Shown piece by piece: positions 20,289 through 30,811 of a stretch of DNA of 64,000 bases. Below the pieces are notes generated by a model. It made no database searches. It saw only the letters and a program-made list of their open reading frames with translations, and was not told the origin of the DNA. Position numbers and translations under genes: made by a program. Positions within the stretch are counted from its first letter, which is position 1. Each line of letters begins with the position of its first letter. The stretch comes from Thecamonas trahens ATCC 50062 (Eukaryota > Protista > Apusomonadida), in assembly GCF_000142905.1 (NCBI RefSeq), contig NW_013657679.1:572114-636113 (forward strand), written 5' to 3'.

Positions 20289-23200
20289 ATGGCAGCACAC
20301 ATGGTCACCCTGAACAGGACAGATCACGCGTTCTGCATGTACTCAGCTGTGACGTCACGTGCGGAGCCTTTGCTCTCTGACTTTGTGAAGGGTGTATTTG
20401 CAGCGGGTTTCTCGCCGGTGGCCGACCGGACCTGGTTCCAAGCGCTGAAGACGACGCTGACACGGACCATGAGCGTGCACTTGAAGACGGTCGACGATGT
20501 GCTTGATGTATACTCGGCGACTTTTCTCCTTCGCAAGCAGTTCAAGCTCGTACTGGCCGTACTCGGCTGGTTGCCCGAGTCTGAAAACGCCGCGCACCTG
20601 CACAAGGCTGTCGACACCATCTTCTACTCGCGCAACTGGATCTCCCACGGCTCACTGCGCCTAGGTGAGGCCGAGCGCGCCGTCAACGCGCTGAAGCATA
20701 TACTGCGCACCATATCGCCTTTCCGGCTGGAATCTGTGCTTGAAGCAGTGCGTGGTGTCGAAGAGAAGTATGCCCCAACACCGCTGGCCGACGTGACCGG
20801 CGTGCTGGCGCAGGTGTGCGCCGGACTGGTCGCCAGGCCGTCTGAAATCGACGCGCTAGAGTGGGTGAAGGACCAAGCGGATGAGGTGACTCTGTCCGAT
20901 GTCGAGTACGCGTATGTGGTGATGCGCCGTGGCTTTGCGGAGCTATTCAACGCGTTCCGTTCTGTACTCCATGATTGCCGAATCACCAAACCTGACGAGG
21001 CGCATGTGCTCTGCTGCTTTGACTGCAAAATGATGGTGCTCAAGTGCCGAGACTTTCCTTTCGATACCGAGGCGCAGCTGAGTAACAGCGAACGAGCGAG
21101 CAAGGATGCCTTGACTACTCACTTGGGCAAGGAAGGGTGCACCGCGTGCGCCGAGACGGTCGCATGGTGCTGCCACGATGTGGCCTCGCTCAAGAATCAC
21201 CTCGACAAATGTACCATTGGCGACTCGGCATGTGGCAACGGCATGGGCGATCTAACCATTGATCTAATGGCACTCGTCAAGCAGCGCCATAACATGGCGC
21301 ACGGTAGTGCTGACGCAACGGGATGGGTCGTCCTCAACCGTCTGGGTGCGCTGAAGCGGGTACTCGACGCGCTGGCAACCAGGACATACCTTTCCGACGA
21401 CCGTGCATCGCATGTTGGCGCATGCGCCGCAAGTGTCGCGAACGAGATGGACCAGCTCACGAGCGTGCTGCGCGACTCTGTAGGTGGATGCGTGGAGGAG
21501 CGCATTGAGGCGGTGTTGGAGCAGCTCGGGTCAAGCTTTCAGCCTGTCGTCATCAAGTGCCCTGTGGTGAAGGCAACACCACTCCCAACGAACATCGACG
21601 CGGCACAGCACGCCCTGGGCGGATGTCTCGTTTGCGTCTGGCATGGCAAGATACCGCAGTTGTCAGACGGCGCAGCCAGAGACACCATGCTCACCCAGCT
21701 CCGCGTGCTGCGCGTCGCAGTCGCCAAAGAGCGCAAGACGTACCGTTTGCGCAGCTTGACTGAGATTGCGGCCAAAATCCACGAGCTGGCGAACAAGAGC
21801 AAGACCGACAAAGCCAGAGCTGATCTCGAGAGCATGCTTCAGCTGGTGGGCGTGTCGACTGAGATGTCGGATGACGAATTGGGCGAGACTGTGCTAAGCT
21901 GGATAGACTCGCTCGACGTCTGTGTCTGCCATGCACCCGTGCGCTCAGCGATCGTTGAGCCGGCCACCTGCTCGTGTGAGAAGGAGCTGCTTGCATTGGT
22001 GCCGAAGCGCGAGCGCGCGTTGTTTGGACGAGATCGCATCCAGGCGGCTTGTGTGGCGCTCAATGACGACGAACTCCCGACGAAGTTTGCGAGGCTGGCG
22101 ACTTTTCTGCAGGCCATGGACTGCGAGGTGGCTCGGGATGTGTTTGCTAGATCTGGCAAGGTGATTGCCCGCGTTATGGCGATGAGGACTACGGTGCCGT
22201 TCGGATTTTTGCGGCGCGAGATCGCTGGCGTGGACGCAAAGTACGTTGGTCGGCACGACAAGGTGAAGCAGCTCACAGACGCTTTCGAGGCCGCCGCCGC
22301 TTCTGATGGCCGCGGGCCGGTTCAAGCATTCATGGTGTGCGGCGAGACAGGAATGGGCAAGACAACGACGGTCGTTGAGGCGCTGCGACAACATCACCGC
22401 AATGGGCGCGTGTTGGCGGAGAAGGGAAAGTGGGTGCTGCACATGCGTGTGCAGGGGCGGATGGTTCACGAAGCACTCGATGAGCTTGCGGCGATTGCTC
22501 GTGAGCAGCGCGCCGCACTTGGTGTGGCAGCAGACGTTGTAGACGACGGCGAGTATGTGGAGAGCCTGGTGAAGTTCTGCCGTCGCGATGAGACGGTGTG
22601 GGTCCTCGTTGTTGACGATGTCTTGGCCTGCAGTGTGTGGAATGAGATCTGCGGCAAGTTTGCTGGTGTGCCCGGCGGTGTAGTGGTGGGTACATCGCTT
22701 GCGGACGAGTCGGTCTGGGCCGAAGCGGCCGTTGACATTGTGCGGCTGGAGCCGCTCACCCGTGATGAGGCCAAGGTGCTTGCCAAGCGGGTTGGGCTTG
22801 ACCTCGAGCCTGATGTCTGGGACGAAGTTGCAGCGTTCTGTGACAAGACATTGCAAAACCTGCCGCTCGCGGTGCGGCTGTTTTTCACCCAGGCAAGAAA
22901 CCGGTGCGGAGTTGAAATCCAGAGCCTAATGCAGGACCCTGTGTTTGTTCTCGAGGGCGGCGAGGAGCATTTGCGCGGGGTACTCGGGACGATGCGCTTG
23001 GCGCTGCGTGGACTGGATGACAACGCCCGCGGGATGATGGCTGTACTTGCAGTGATTGATGTCGATCGCGTACCTACGTTCCTGCTCGACGGACGCGTGA
23101 TCGACGGTCTTGTAATGGAACCTGTGGATGGCGTTCCGCTGTCGAAGGGGTTGGCGGCTGACCGCGCGGCACTGGTGCTGCGCCAGGAGGGGCTTGTGCG

Positions 23201-24872
23201 ACTTATGAGCGACGAACGTGGGCGTGTGTGGTACCAGACCCACGCACTGATTCGCGAGGCTGTGCGTGTGGCTCTAGGTGGCGATGTTGTGAGCAATGGT
23301 GGGGTAGTGGCGAGTCGGCTGATCGGCGCGCGCGTGAAGTACGACGGTGAACGCGTTCCGGAGTTGGTGTTTGGCGAACTGGCCGACGTTCTGGAGACGG
23401 TCTGGCGGGCGAACTGGCCAGAAGCAGATGTATGGGTGTTGTCGGTTGGTGAGCGGCTGGCACACGCGCATGTCATGCTCGATCGCGTCATGGGGTGGGC
23501 CGACGCGGGAGTCGCGCGACATGACAAGGACGAATGCTCCCTGGTGTCATTCCGCAACTTGCGTGGCCGGGTCCACCAATCACGGGGCCAGTACGGTGAG
23601 GCGCTGGCCGAGTACCGTGCAGTGCTTGCTGTGGGCGAGCGGGAGGACGTACTCGGCCCCGAGCATCCATCGACGCTGACGACGCGGCACGGCATTGCTG
23701 GCGTGCTGGAAGCACAGGGCCAGTACGCCGAGGCGCTGGCCGAGTACCGTGCAGTGCTTGCTGTGCAAGAGCGGGAGGACGTACTCGGCCCCGAGCATCC
23801 ATCGACGCTGACGACGCGGCACAACATTGCTGTCGTGCTGGAAGCACAGGGCCAGTACGCCGAGGCGCTGGCCGAGTACCGTGCAGTGCTTGCTGTGCGC
23901 GAGCGGGAGGACGTACTCGGCCCCGAGCATCCATCGACGCTGACGACGCGGCACGGCATTGCTGGCGTGCTGGAAGCACAGGGCCAGTACGCCGAGGCGC
24001 TGGCCGAGTACCGTGCAGTGCTTGCTGTGCAAGAGCGGGAGGACGTACTCGGCCCCGAGCATCCATCGACGCTGACGACGCGGCACAACATTGCTGGCGT
24101 GCTGGAAGCACAGGGCCAGTACGCCGAGGCGCTGGCCGAGTAGCGTGCAGTGCTTGCTGTGCGCGAGCGGGATGACGTACTCGGCCCCGAGCATCCATCG
24201 ACGCTGACGACGCGGCACAACCTAGCCGTCGCTGCTCTTCTTGGTGGAAAGTCGCACGCGGCGCTTTCGCTGCGCTGTTTGATGGATCATGCTGGGATTG
24301 ATGACGCCCTCGTACTGGTAAGCTGTCTTGCAGTCGTGCACTGGAATGGTGCATGCGACATGGCGTCGACCGTCGCTCATCACTTTCCACATGTCCTTGA
24401 AACGCCTCTCGTTGGCGATACACAATCCGAGAGCACTTGGATTCTGACACACCTGATCCTTGCGGTTGTTCTTGTGGCAGGCAAGTTCCGTGATCATGCT
24501 GCCGCTGCCGACCACCTGGCTGCGGTTGTCGACCTCGTAGGCGATCGTGGGCTTCCTATTCATTCACGACTGCTCGACAACCTTGGGTTCTCGGCCTTGT
24601 GCTCTGCTCCAGACGTGCTGACTACAAGGATCCGCCGCTATCGCAAGGAGCACAGACGGCGCACGAAGCACGGTGAAGTGCTTGCTCCGCCTCCATTGTC
24701 ACTCGACGAGGTCATTGTTGCGCTTCGTGCGCGGTTTGGTGATGATGGCAGTGGTGTCGCCGAGGCCGAGCCAAGTGATCAGGCTAAGGGCAAGTCGAAG
24801 ATGAAGAGCAAGAGCAGGAACAAGAAGAAGAAGAAGGCCAAGAAGAAGAACAAGGGGCAGCGGCGACGATAA
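20289..24872 (+). CDS. NLR-like STAND protein: HEPN-HEPN - NB-ARC-like ATPase - TPR repeats; in-frame TAG at 24141-24143
   Basis: R-x4-H motifs RNWISH and RHNMAH; YVGR; Walker A GETGMGKT (22341-22364); Walker B WVLVVDDV (22599-22622); NLPLAV; YQTHALIRE; five 44-aa TPRs (LGPEHPSTLTTRH). The frame continues past the TAG to 24872. Start could be as far upstream as 20127. Confidence 0.85.
23585..24221 (+). repeat. Coding tandem repeat, ~4.8 x 132 bp (44-aa TPR units)
   Basis: Units start at 23585, 23717, 23849, 23981 and 24113; near-identical at the nucleotide level. Confidence 0.97.
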
Positions 24873-28616: not shown

Positions 28617-29074
28617 GGTATGAGGGAGGTTGAGGAAGGTAAGGGTGTGGAGAAGATGTGTCTGTGTGTGGGGGGAGGGGGGAGTGTGGGGAGGGGAGAG
28701 GAGGAGGGAGGGTGAGGGGAGAGAGGTATGGGGAAAGGGAGCCCTGTCGCAATGGTGTGTGGGCTGCCGGTGGTGGTGGTTGGTGGTGGTTGGTGGTGGT
28801 TGGTGGTGGTTGGTGGGCAAGGACCAAACTTGGGCGCAAAGTTGGGCGCCAACTCGGGCGCGCCAAGGTCACCGCCACTGGCTTCCCGCCACCGCTCTCC
28901 CTCTTTCCCGCCACCAGTACCCCGCCACACCACCACTACACACATACGCATACACATACGCACCCACACCCACACACACAAACACACACATTTATACATA
29001 CATACACACATACACACATACACACACACGCACACACACGCATATACATACCCCCCCTTCCCAGCACCCTCACC

Positions 29075-30811
29075 ATGGCACAGGTACGCCTCTTCCGCTC
29101 CTCCTCCCCCGCTCCCCTCCCAGCCCCTCCCCGCCCCCTTCACTCACACACTGTGCAACAACAGCATACACCGGTGCCGCGGCTATCGCTGGAGTTTGCC
29201 AAGGTGGAGTACCAGCTCAAGCTGGCGCTGCAAGCGACGACGGTGGAGCTGGACGAGGTGGCGGCCATCGGCAACCCAAACCTCTCGCTGGCCTTTGAGG
29301 CCCGGGCGGCCGAGATGATGACGCTGTACGCATGGGTCGACGCCGCGCTGGTGGGCGATCTCAACTCGGTGGACGAGGTCATGGCGCGCGGGTTCCGGTT
29401 CCAGGACGCTGGCATGCTGTTTGCTGTCGGCTCTATCGTCATTCCCGACGGCGCGCCGCGCGACCACCAGTACATGCTCTGCAAGATTGCCGTGGGGCGG
29501 TCGTACGTGGTGGAGGAAGAGGCGCTGCAGGCGGCGCGGGTCGAGATCCCCGAAGGCTACGACTCGATCTATGTCCACTCGGCGGCGTCTGAGGAGGCGC
29601 ACGTGTACCACCACGAGTACCTGCTGCAGGACCCGGCCCAGGTCCTCCCGCTCTTCCTCGTCAACTTTAAGTTTGACCCCGCGTCCGAGGCTGCAGCCGG
29701 TGTCACGCTGTGCGAAGTGTGCGAGGAGGCCGAGGCCACGCTCTACTGTCAGCAGGACGACGCGCGGCTGTGCAAGGAGTGCGACGCCGAGATCCACTCG
29801 GCCAACAAGCTTGTCCAGCGCCACACGCGCTCGGAGCTCGGCGCCGTTCCGCTCGCCTTTGGCGACTGCGCCTACCACCCAGGCAACTCGGTTGAGTACT
29901 TTTGCCCCATCGACCACGTCCCGGTCTGCGTCCACTGCAAGATGATCGGCTCGCACGCCTCGGGCGAGGCCGCCTCGCACAAGCTCATCACCATCCGCGA
30001 GGCCTATGCCGCCGCCCTCGACGCCGCCAACCGCGACGACCCGACCGTTGGCTCCAAGCGCTCCGACATTCTGAAGAAGCTCTCCGGCATCGACTCGTCC
30101 CTCCGCGCCGTCCAGGCCAACGCCGCCGCCGCCGAGGAGCGCATTTACGAGCTCCTCCAGGCTGCGCTCTTCCAACTGCAGGTCTCGACCCAGGCCAAGC
30201 TCGCCCTCCTCCTCGGCGACGAGCTCGAGATGCGGCGCCAGCTCGGTGAGCTCGAGCACATGGACGCGTTCCTCACCTACCAGCGCTCGGTCCTCAAGCC
30301 GACCAACTTTCTCGAGGCCTGGAACAAGCACCTGCTCCTCCGCGCCGAGATCCACGACACTGCGCCCGAGTCGCTCCGCCCGCTCTCGGACGTCCAGGCC
30401 GACCTGCAGGTGGTTGGCGAGGTGGTTGTCACCACCGCCTCGGCCCAGGGCCCGGGCCAAGGCATGCCGCCGGTGGATCACGCCCGTGCCGCCCACGACC
30501 TCGACATGCGCGCCATGCTCGCCTCCAAGGCCTCGTCCAACTTTCGCGCCCTCGTCTTCCGCGACTCGCCGGCCCGGGTCCCCGACCCGGCCGACCGCAA
30601 CCCGGCCGCTGCTATCGAGTCGTCCATGATTGCTGCTGGCGACCTCGGCCGCTCCGACTACGGCCCGCGCCACGACGACTCGGTCCTCCGCGCCCACAAC
30701 GATTCGATGCTCTCGTCGGTCCCGCACTCGGCCGCAAAGCCGGTCGTCAAGTCGACCACTGACCTCTGGTCCGAGTCGCTCAACCGCCACTTTGCCGCCC
30801 ACCCGCGCTGA
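29075..30811 (+). CDS. Degenerate PARP/ART-fold domain + two B-box zinc fingers + coiled coil; probable intron 29084-29164
   Basis: PARP-like NPNLSLAFE, RGF, MLCKIAVG, GYDS, HEYLLQDPAQVLP; B-box1 CEVCEE..YCQQDDARLCKECDAEIH..HTR; B-box2 CAYH..YFCPIDHVPVCVHC..H..HKL; coiled coil. Confidence 0.8.
   Translation: MAQVRLFRSSSPAPLPAPPRPLHSHTVQQQHTPVPRLSLEFAKVEYQLKLALQATTVELDEVAAIGNPNLSLAFEARAAEMMTLYAWVDAALVGDLNSVDEVMARGFRFQDAGMLFAVGSIVIPDGAPRDHQYMLCKIAVGRSYVVEEEALQAARVEIPEGYDSIYVHSAASEEAHVYHHEYLLQDPAQVLPLFLVNFKFDPASEAAAGVTLCEVCEEAEATLYCQQDDARLCKECDAEIHSANKLVQRHTRSELGAVPLAFGDCAYHPGNSVEYFCPIDHVPVCVHCKMIGSHASGEAASHKLITIREAYAAALDAANRDDPTVGSKRSDILKKLSGIDSSLRAVQANAAAAEERIYELLQAALFQLQVSTQAKLALLLGDELEMRRQLGELEHMDAFLTYQRSVLKPTNFLEAWNKHLLLRAEIHDTAPESLRPLSDVQADLQVVGEVVVTTASAQGPGQGMPPVDHARAAHDLDMRAMLASKASSNFRALVFRDSPARVPDPADRNPAAAIESSMIAAGDLGRSDYGPRHDDSVLRAHNDSMLSSVPHSAAKPVVKSTTDLWSESLNRHFAAHPR

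Follow-up and report, generated by a model that had tools for sequence, protein, structure and literature searches.

Does the genome of the marine flagellate Thecamonas trahens encode an immune-type receptor that carries its own RNase, built from two HEPN domains in one polypeptide chain? The question is raised by a single reading frame in a 64,000-nucleotide stretch of contig NW_013657679.1 from strain ATCC 50062 (positions 572,114 to 636,113 of the forward strand). This whole stretch is called the window here, and positions are counted from its first letter. The frame runs on the + strand from its first ATG to the codon preceding an in-frame TAG (20289..24140) and encodes 1284 amino acids, a product that is present as a record in the protein collection. 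The gene is apparently intronless, and behind the TAG (24141-24143) the frame continues open up to 24872. A reading made from the sequence only, without searches, had described it as an NLR-like receptor with two R-x4-H motifs in HEPN contexts, a complete STAND ATPase and an array of TPRs, and every motif that it quoted (both R-x4-H motifs, YVGR, GETGMGKT, WVLVVDDV, NLPLAV and YQTHAL) was found at its position. On balance, we favour the view that the gene encodes a single-copy NLR-like receptor, composed of a Swt1-clade HEPN dyad, a Cys-rich linker, an NB-ARC-type STAND module and a homogenised TPR array, and that this receptor would act as a sensor-gated RNase.

The proposal depends on motif 1 (R115-N-W-I-S-H120; 20631-20648, + strand) and motif 2 (R333-H-N-M-A-H338; 21285-21302, + strand). 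By number alone such motifs are not above chance, the protein containing four R-x4-H against 2.9 expected from its composition. An exhaustive phmmer search of 1.84 billion cluster representatives returned six matches, of which five (P0002, P0003, P0004, P0005 and P0007; E-values 1.8e-7 to 7.4e-4) are genuine distant homologs, with 23-24% identity to the window protein in a six-sequence alignment. The sixth, P0006, is a repetitive protein that matched one short stretch seven times, and it was dropped as spurious. W49, D73, R115, N116, H120, V210, L326, R333 and H338 are invariant in the six-sequence alignment, together with C230, R231, D236, H239, C243, C246, H278, C284, C287, C294, D297, H304 and C308. 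Both motifs are kept as R-[N/H]-x3-H in all five homologs, position 334 being N or H, and the invariance of R333 and H338 holds in a seven-sequence alignment too. The two cited motifs thus stand above chance because R115, N116, H120, R333 and H338 have remained invariant in five homologs at such low identity, and conservation in homologs, which had been named as a check on the idea, was found for both motifs in five of five.

As judged from these alignments, the window protein belongs to a real but rare sequence family, recognised by no curated model. Word-indexed searches with the single sequence or with a profile returned only the window protein itself and P0004, and sequence and profile searches of the PDB were uninformative. 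A degenerate DNA pattern for T-R-N-W-W-A-H, run against metagenome contigs, gave at least 120 loci; among the matches listed, only L054 and L084 are family members. Another of these loci, on an unrelated metagenome contig (L136, 2077-3042), encodes a clear HEPN_Swt1 protein (50 bits) with the heptad, which is therefore common to the homologs and a Pfam-recognised Swt1-like protein. Comparison of the family profiles with the L136 protein merely re-found the motif that had been used to fish it and was not counted.

The core of a HEPN domain has four helices with an insert between helices 2 and 3; its R-x4-6-H motif lies where helix 3 ends, and the polar residue after R contributes to catalysis (PMC3710099). 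Domain 1 (approximately residues 8-145; 20310..20723, + strand) is delimited by an AlphaFold model, the Pfam matches of the homologs and the invariant motif. The model, computed on the family alignment for 454 residues (pLDDT 73.9, pTM 0.71), predicts helices at 10-40 and 48-61, an insert at 62-98 and helices at 99-119 and 125-142, with block pLDDT values mostly of 74-87, and it places R115-N116-x3-H120 at the end of helix 99-119, just ahead of the loop that leads into the following helix. Judged by secondary structure and order alone, and with no structural match specific to this domain, the predicted domain reproduces the helix order of HEPN, including the placement of the insert and the motif. 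The residue after R, which is N in motif 1 and N or H in motif 2, matches the polar position tied to catalysis (PMC3710099). All five homologs match the Pfam family HEPN_Swt1 below its cutoff (E-values 4.2e-5, 4.3e-4, 1.7e-3, 0.09 and 0.18), with alignments that span up to positions 6-112 of the 115 in the profile and lie in the region corresponding to residues 8-145. By this transitive profile evidence, domain 1 can be assigned with good confidence as a Swt1-clade HEPN. The contexts had originally been called Swt1/DZIP3-like for both regions; the first is Swt1-like by the homolog profiles, whereas the second drew weak matches (Pfam E-values 0.045-0.34, Z score 7.4).

That second region, candidate domain 2 (approximately residues 200-400; 20886..21488, + strand), is delimited by two AlphaFold models and the invariant R333 and H338. 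The second model, of residues 196-405 alone, has a pLDDT of 78.5, and in both models helix 204-233 is followed by short helices and an insert (237-307), helix 320-338 and helices 345-363 and 370-397. R333-H334-x3-H338 falls at the end of helix 320-338, and the predicted fold is a four-helix core with an insert. At motif 2, weak Pfam matches were found to HEPN_MAE_28990 (E-value 0.045) and RiboL-PSP-HEPN (E-value 0.34). When the model was compared with 48,161 chains by VIA-align, the C-terminal domain of yeast Swt1 (4pqz_A) ranked third (Z score 7.4, root mean square deviation 3.7, 127 of 136 residues aligned), and the N-terminal region of Roquin (Z 6.9) and Cas13 HEPN regions (Z 6.3-6.5) were in the same top 50, all values that are below the approximately 8-13 needed for helical bundles and hence within helical-bundle noise. 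The whole 454-residue model retrieved only generic helical bundles in VIA-align, with the HEPN region of AbiA at Z 6.6, and noise only in a shape search of the ESM Atlas. In an embedding search with residues 190-410 the nearest named clusters were HEPN_Swt1, HEPN_DZIP3 and DUF4559, with scores of 0.85-0.89 that serve as leads only. A profile-profile alignment of the two domains, with the insert removed, runs collinearly, pairing their first helices as well as their motifs, at a hhalign P value of 0.006 and a probability of only 6%. The case for domain 2 is weaker than that for domain 1, yet its parts agree, and we regard it as likely that domain 2 is a HEPN.

The insert of domain 2 contains a cluster of Cys and His residues (residues 230-308; 20976..21212, + strand): C230, H239, C243-x2-C246, H278, C284-x2-C287, C294, H304 and C308. 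These ten residues, with their two CxxC knuckles, are invariant in the six- and seven-sequence alignments, and the insert probably binds zinc. Its layout resembles that of the CXorf38/DZIP3-like type without a profile match, the corresponding families (PF15112 and PF18738) giving no Pfam match in the window protein or the homologs and turning up only as embedding neighbours with scores of 0.85-0.88, a lead and no more. Zinc-ribbon HEPN domains have been described in the Swt1-like clade, so a dyad with a zinc insert in its second member fits known variation.

Behind the dyad, a Cys-rich middle region (residues 401-640; 21489..22208, + strand) contains nine Cys, is partly alignable to P0003, P0004 and P0005 and gave no Pfam match. 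It leads into a STAND P-loop NTPase of the NB-ARC type (22209..23288, + strand), identified by the Pfam families AAA_16 and NB-ARC and by a series of ordered motifs. On the + strand these are YVGR (22242-22253), Walker A GETGMGKT (residues 685-692; 22341-22364), Walker B WVLVVDDV (VLVVDD at residues 772-777; 22599-22622), the GLPLA-like NLPLAV (residues 857-862; 22857-22874) and the MHD-like YQTHAL (Q-T-H-A at residues 983-986; 23232-23249). With Walker A, Walker B, GLPLA-like and MHD-like motifs in order, the region bears the NB-ARC (AP-ATPase) signature. AAA_16 scored 39-43 bits (42.7 in one scan) against a cutoff of 32.6, the module extending over residues 650-865. NB-ARC scored 21.2-22.2 bits in protein scans against a cutoff of 23.5; in the genome scan it reached 23.4 bits and, at 24 with its neighbours in frame, was counted over the cutoff. 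The protein has the tripartite layout of NLR and Avs-like proteins, with an N-terminal effector, a central STAND and C-terminal repeats. The effector/NB-ARC-like STAND/TPR layout that had been proposed is in this way borne out by Pfam and by the ordered NTPase motifs.

The same layout appears in the relatives. P0005, a metagenomic protein of 1043 residues, shares the N-terminal module and carries behind it a P-loop STAND (NPHP3_N, E-value 1.9e-6; NB-ARC, E-value 3.9e-4), which is collinear with the window protein from a G-R-H before the P-loop to the MHD-like motif, with the same motif order. The HEPN-bearing gene of the P0003 locus (L028, from a public run) stops with ...L-V-G-R at a splice-donor-like site, GTACGT. 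The called gene after it opens with a P-loop (AAA_16, NPHP3_N) and gives a weak TPR match; the two exons were searched separately. The other three homologs lie on contigs of 1.7-2.2 kb and are cut. As far as sequence can tell, the HEPN-HEPN-STAND layout is thus present in both homologs with enough sequence, P0005 and the P0003 locus. At L028 3560-3760, the P-loop exon begins about 120 nucleotides after the GTACGT donor, and this relative has an intron where the window gene has none. The gene adjoining the HEPN gene of P0003 is a CFAP77-like flagellar gene, and the source of P0003 is therefore also a flagellated eukaryote.

The C-terminal part of the frame consists of a TPR array of five units of 132 nucleotides (44 residues; 23571..24230, + strand), delimited by Tandem Repeats Finder, a per-codon comparison and the Pfam families TPR_10 and TPR_12, which match from about residue 1090 (E-values 1e-36 to 1e-41). 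The units are 95% identical at the DNA level. Units 2-5 differ mainly at unit codons 22 (G/Q/R), 41 (G/N) and 44 (G/V), all of these differences being amino-acid changing, and unit 5 has further differences at codons 15 (the stop), 25, 42 and 43. This is the pattern of homogenised, diversifying repeats. The in-frame TAG (24141..24143, + strand) is codon 15 of unit 5, where the other four units have TAC (Tyr). The STAND module that had been called complete does have all its motifs, but the receptor as assembled is not intact, given the premature stop inside TPR unit 5: a complete receptor would need read-through, a sequencing error or an intact allele. Assemblies break in the repeat, and no contig of four public runs crosses the TAG. 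Either this copy may be truncated, or the near-identical repeat may have been misassembled at the stop. The frame behind it (24144..24872, + strand) comprises the rest of TPR unit 5, about 200 residues without a family match and a Lys-rich tail. Its GC content by codon position (0.71/0.45/0.55) is still coding-like, with the third-position value (GC3) down from about 0.70. Its openness proves little: in this GC-rich window, a random position and frame remains open over 243 codons in about 15% of cases. No paralog of the region was found in the genome. Very many unrelated contigs in the RNA and DNA runs match the AAG-rich, Lys-rich tail (24692-24872), with a depth in the thousands, so coverage there is uninformative on the receptor gene.

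Public runs that contain the stretch come from a cultured organism and from marine and estuary metagenomes. Over residues 1-1000, comparison with wild relatives (a marine-metagenome relative and two other runs, all low-depth contigs) gave 11 synonymous and 7 non-synonymous differences, where 73% non-synonymous would be expected (binomial p 0.002); 15 further differences are not listed in this count, and sites in the TPR units were excluded because of possible cross-mapping between units. The count points to purifying selection, at the level of the population, on the parts that hold HEPN and STAND. In the helical stretch before the TPR array (23327-23617), one marine-metagenome contig differs at 8 of 291 bases. 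Seven of these differences are listed, one synonymous and six non-synonymous, and the divergence is higher and more protein-changing there than over the HEPN and NTPase parts.

The 28.7-Mb genome as a whole holds at least 21 NB-ARC loci, in frames that reach about 2400 residues. The N-terminal regions of 14 were scanned and carry TIR (seven), protein kinase (five), ankyrin plus TIR (one) or WD40 (one) domains. Among the NB-ARC loci, which include L031-L041 on contigs C49, C97, C71, C59, C17, C57, C22, C70, C64 and C67, roughly ten lie within about 2-12 kb of a contig end, which suggests subtelomere-like clusters of NLR-type genes. Searches of the genome with the protein, the family profile and HEPN_Swt1 found no paralog of the HEPN module or of the N-terminal 640 residues, the HEPN_Swt1 profile giving no match across the whole genome; a search with HEPN_DZIP3 also returned nothing, but its control was silent as well, so that this blank means little. 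The HEPN-headed receptor is the only one of its type found in the genome, and its NTPase is too divergent to retrieve the other NB-ARC loci by protein search. The check for paralogs that accompanied the first reading thus brought out a wider NLR-like repertoire, though no second copy of the HEPN module. A very long array of near-identical 42-residue TPR_12 units was seen at C45:300193-305300 (L003-L017), in which a run of N marks an assembly gap; behind the array lies a C-terminal region without annotation.

The window itself carries ordinary eukaryotic genes on both strands, mostly as long uninterrupted frames, among them genes for an axonemal dynein light chain, a rootletin-like protein, a DEAD-box helicase, an ion channel and a B-box protein. 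The last is a TRIM-like frame of 717 residues (28658-30811) that carries two B-box zinc fingers (E-value 1.9e-14) and lies about 4 kb downstream of the receptor. The GC3 of the receptor is 0.71, compared with 0.76-0.86 in well-annotated window genes, and the 20-22 kb stretch has the lowest GC content (0.587) of the central window. The low values of the receptor fit weak codon bias or a younger gene and are by themselves no evidence of transfer.

In STAND proteins, ligand binding to the repeats turns a closed, ADP-bound state into ATP-bound oligomers in which the N-terminal effectors are brought together. HEPN RNases, which are metal-independent, require two adjacent R-x4-H motifs, a pairing that is reached by dimerisation in RNase L, Ire1 and Csm6 and in cis in Cas13. 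From these families we infer a course of events for the window protein, in which the domain order, the conserved catalytic-type residues and the conservation of the layout are what is observed. The TPR array would recognise a ligand, upon which the STAND module would exchange its nucleotide and oligomerise. The N-terminal HEPN domains would then be released or assembled into an active, metal-independent RNase. The two R-x4-H motifs forming each catalytic site would be supplied either by both domains of a single chain or by equivalent domains on neighbouring chains. RNA cleavage would finally lead to growth arrest or death of the infected or stressed cell. The pTM of 0.71 of the 454-residue model suggests no more than a defined packing of the two domains, and prediction of a complex of HEPN 1 and HEPN 2 as two chains scored 0.24 against a mark of 0.34, which is evidence neither way. 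A more specific version, which we hold only tentatively, would see in this protein a small, protist-specific NLR family in which a catalytically intact cis HEPN dyad serves as a Cas13-like intramolecular RNase, with a zinc module in the second domain, an NB-ARC off-switch and a diversifying TPR trigger. If true, this would give eukaryotes a single-chain counterpart to abortive-infection RNases, and for the first time a HEPN-NLR would have a mechanism open to testing.

Several observations weigh against a sensor-gated RNase. No RNase activity, ligand or phenotype is on record for any family member, and the HEPN dyad of Swt1 itself has been described as catalytically inactive (PMC3710099). The HEPN_Swt1 scores of the homologs (12.5-24.3 bits) are all below the gathering threshold of PF18731 (27.5), and the window protein gave no match to this Pfam family at E-values up to 1; the protein is therefore termed a relative of the Swt1-like clade and not a member of PF18731. 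The Z score of 7.4 for Swt1 is tied with those of bromodomains, ferritin-like proteins and other four-helix bundles. Foldseek, which had been proposed as one way to recognise HEPN families, found no match in the PDB at E-values up to 0.001 for either the 454-residue model or the model of domain 2. The TAG cuts off the TPR array and the C-terminal 243 codons, and none of the contigs of four public runs extends across 24036-24199. Expression evidence, finally, is confined to four short contigs from one metatranscriptome, 98-100% identical to the NTPase part (22201-23221), which are no proof of transcription, as the library may hold DNA.

Four other explanations of the locus have to be set against these data, two of which concern the HEPN dyad. 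If only the first region were a HEPN, the second would be an unrelated zinc-binding helical domain that keeps its R-x4-H for another reason, and there would be no tandem site. The absence of a significant HEPN profile match in residues 200-400 of the window protein or the homologs agrees with this, as do the Foldseek blank, the structural matches within helical-bundle noise and the low hhalign probability between the two domains. It would leave aside, however, that motif 2 shares with motif 1 both the R-[N/H]-x3-H form and the position closing the third core helix, that the insert lies where HEPN inserts occur, that the HEPN regions of Swt1, Roquin and Cas13 are all in the top 50 of 48,161 chains, that zinc-ribbon-inserted HEPN is a described type, CXorf38 (PMC3710099), and that Swt1 proteins carry a HEPN dyad; we consider it unlikely. 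Both domains might instead be HEPN-like and non-catalytic, with a role in RNA binding or sensing or as an adaptor, making the protein an RNA-sensing or scaffolding STAND. The closest named family is indeed the Swt1-like one, whose eukaryotic dyad is listed as inactive (PMC3710099), HEPN-NLRs have been suggested as possible cytoplasmic RNA sensors (PMC8662601), and the conserved zinc-type insert could be a nucleic-acid-binding element. Inactive HEPNs, though, are marked by loss of R-x4-6-H, while here R, the polar residue and H are invariant in both domains at about 24% identity, a retention like that in lineages listed as active (PMC3710099). Non-catalytic domains are in our judgement distinctly unlikely.

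The two remaining explanations concern the fate and the function of the gene as a whole. A pseudogene or decaying allele in this strain, in which the TAG is real and the product non-functional, would account for the TAG in place of the TAC of all four other units, for the fall in GC3 behind the stop (from about 0.70 to 0.55), for the singleton status of the gene and for its GC3 of 0.71, below the 0.76-0.86 of conserved neighbours. Against decay speak the 1284 uninterrupted codons before the stop and the purifying selection over residues 1-1000 in comparison with wild relatives; a protein ending after 4.3 TPR units could still work, and the stop is located within a repeat of 95% identity, a setting prone to assembly errors, with no independent contig across it. 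This leaves a pseudogene somewhat unlikely. A housekeeping STAND/TPR protein of the NPHP3 (nephrocystin-3) type, active in cilia or another cellular process and not in immunity, might be suspected from a sub-threshold TPR_NPHP3 match (51 bits against a cutoff of 100), from the NPHP3_N matches in the STAND region of P0005 and in the downstream exon of the P0003 locus, and from the flagellated organism, with axonemal and rootlet genes in the window. NPHP3, on the other hand, has no HEPN and is broadly conserved, whereas this family amounts to about five clusters in 1.84 billion representatives, and homogenised repeats varying at few codons in a genome rich in TIR- and kinase-NB-ARC proteins fit conflict-type receptors. 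Such a housekeeping role appears very improbable, and a sensor-gated HEPN receptor continues to be the explanation that we favour.

How new would such a receptor be? Fusions of HEPN with NACHT/STAND modules have been known since 2013 from cnidarians, cephalochordates and bacteria (PMC3710099). In 2021, nine invertebrate taxa were reported to have HEPN-NLRs (PMC8662601), and in 2023 coral NLRs were seen to carry many DZIP3-like HEPN domains at their N termini (PMC10236652). As HEPN-NLRs have been annotated since 2013, the general idea is known, though from annotation only, and the novelty that the sequence-only reading implied was overstated, HEPN-STAND fusions being already annotated in invertebrates and bacteria (PMC3710099, PMC8662601, PMC10236652). 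In these domain surveys no biochemical test of a HEPN-NLR is reported, and the animal proteins are functionally uncharacterised (PMC3710099, PMC8662601, PMC10236652). What is new here is a rare family without a curated model, a tandem in which both motifs are intact, a conserved Cys/His insert, and the occurrence of a HEPN-NLR in a unicellular marine flagellate beside TIR- and kinase-headed NB-ARC receptors.

The invertebrate HEPN-NLRs, in which a CXorf38/DZIP3-like HEPN is fused to NACHT or NB-ARC, resemble the window protein in having an N-terminal Swt1-clade HEPN before a STAND NTPase with C-terminal repeats. The CXorf38 type among them has a zinc ribbon in its HEPN, as HEPN 2 appears to have here, and the NB-ARC proteins of corals are mostly paired with TPRs. 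They differ in having one HEPN instead of two in tandem and in being animal proteins, and the window protein and its homologs lack a Pfam HEPN_DZIP3 or DUF4559 match. Swt1, an endoribonuclease with a PIN domain and a HEPN dyad (PDB 4pqz), shares with the window protein a dyad of same-clade HEPN domains; of the Pfam families, HEPN_Swt1 fits the homologs best, and the yeast C-terminal domain is one of the top structural matches. In Swt1 the HEPNs, with R-x4-6-H lost in part, are listed as inactive and cutting is left to the PIN domain (PMC3710099), whereas the window protein has both motifs intact, no PIN and a STAND-TPR partner, and does not reach the Pfam threshold.

Bacterial HEPN-STAND and Avs proteins also place a STAND NTPase between an effector at the N terminus and a repeat or sensor region at the C terminus, an N-terminal HEPN with STAND being known in bacteria (PMC3710099), and the expected logic would likewise be ligand-induced oligomerisation that activates the effector. 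They differ in that the window gene is eukaryotic, a homolog locus having a spliceosomal-type intron, and its homogenised TPR sensor is in the style of fungal and animal NLRs; PADLOC models gave no relevant match in the window. Cas13 on the one side and RNase L and Ire1 on the other represent the two known ways of building a HEPN site from two R-x4-H motifs, either of which could hold for a tandem-HEPN STAND, and RNase L further couples a repeat sensor to HEPN activation by oligomerisation. None of the three has a sequence relation to the window protein, the Cas13 regions reaching only Z 6.3-6.5, and activation here would come from a STAND switch, not from guide RNA or 2-5A. Fungal NB-ARC-TPR NLRs are similar in their NB-ARC-type NTPase with GLPLA-like and MHD-like motifs and in TPR_10/TPR_12 repeats that are near-identical at the DNA level. 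Fungal NLRs show highly similar repeats that vary at few positions. To our knowledge, the N-terminal domains described for them do not include a HEPN dyad.

The receptor provides a compact example, of 1284 residues, with clear catalytic candidates in R115/H120 and R333/H338. Should the stop be real, the locus would also document that such receptors undergo birth-and-death turnover. If the dyad is a STAND-gated RNase, RNA-degrading NLR outputs would exist outside animals and bacteria, a second natural solution besides Cas13 would be at hand for building a two-HEPN site in one chain, and protist innate immunity against marine viruses would become directly testable.

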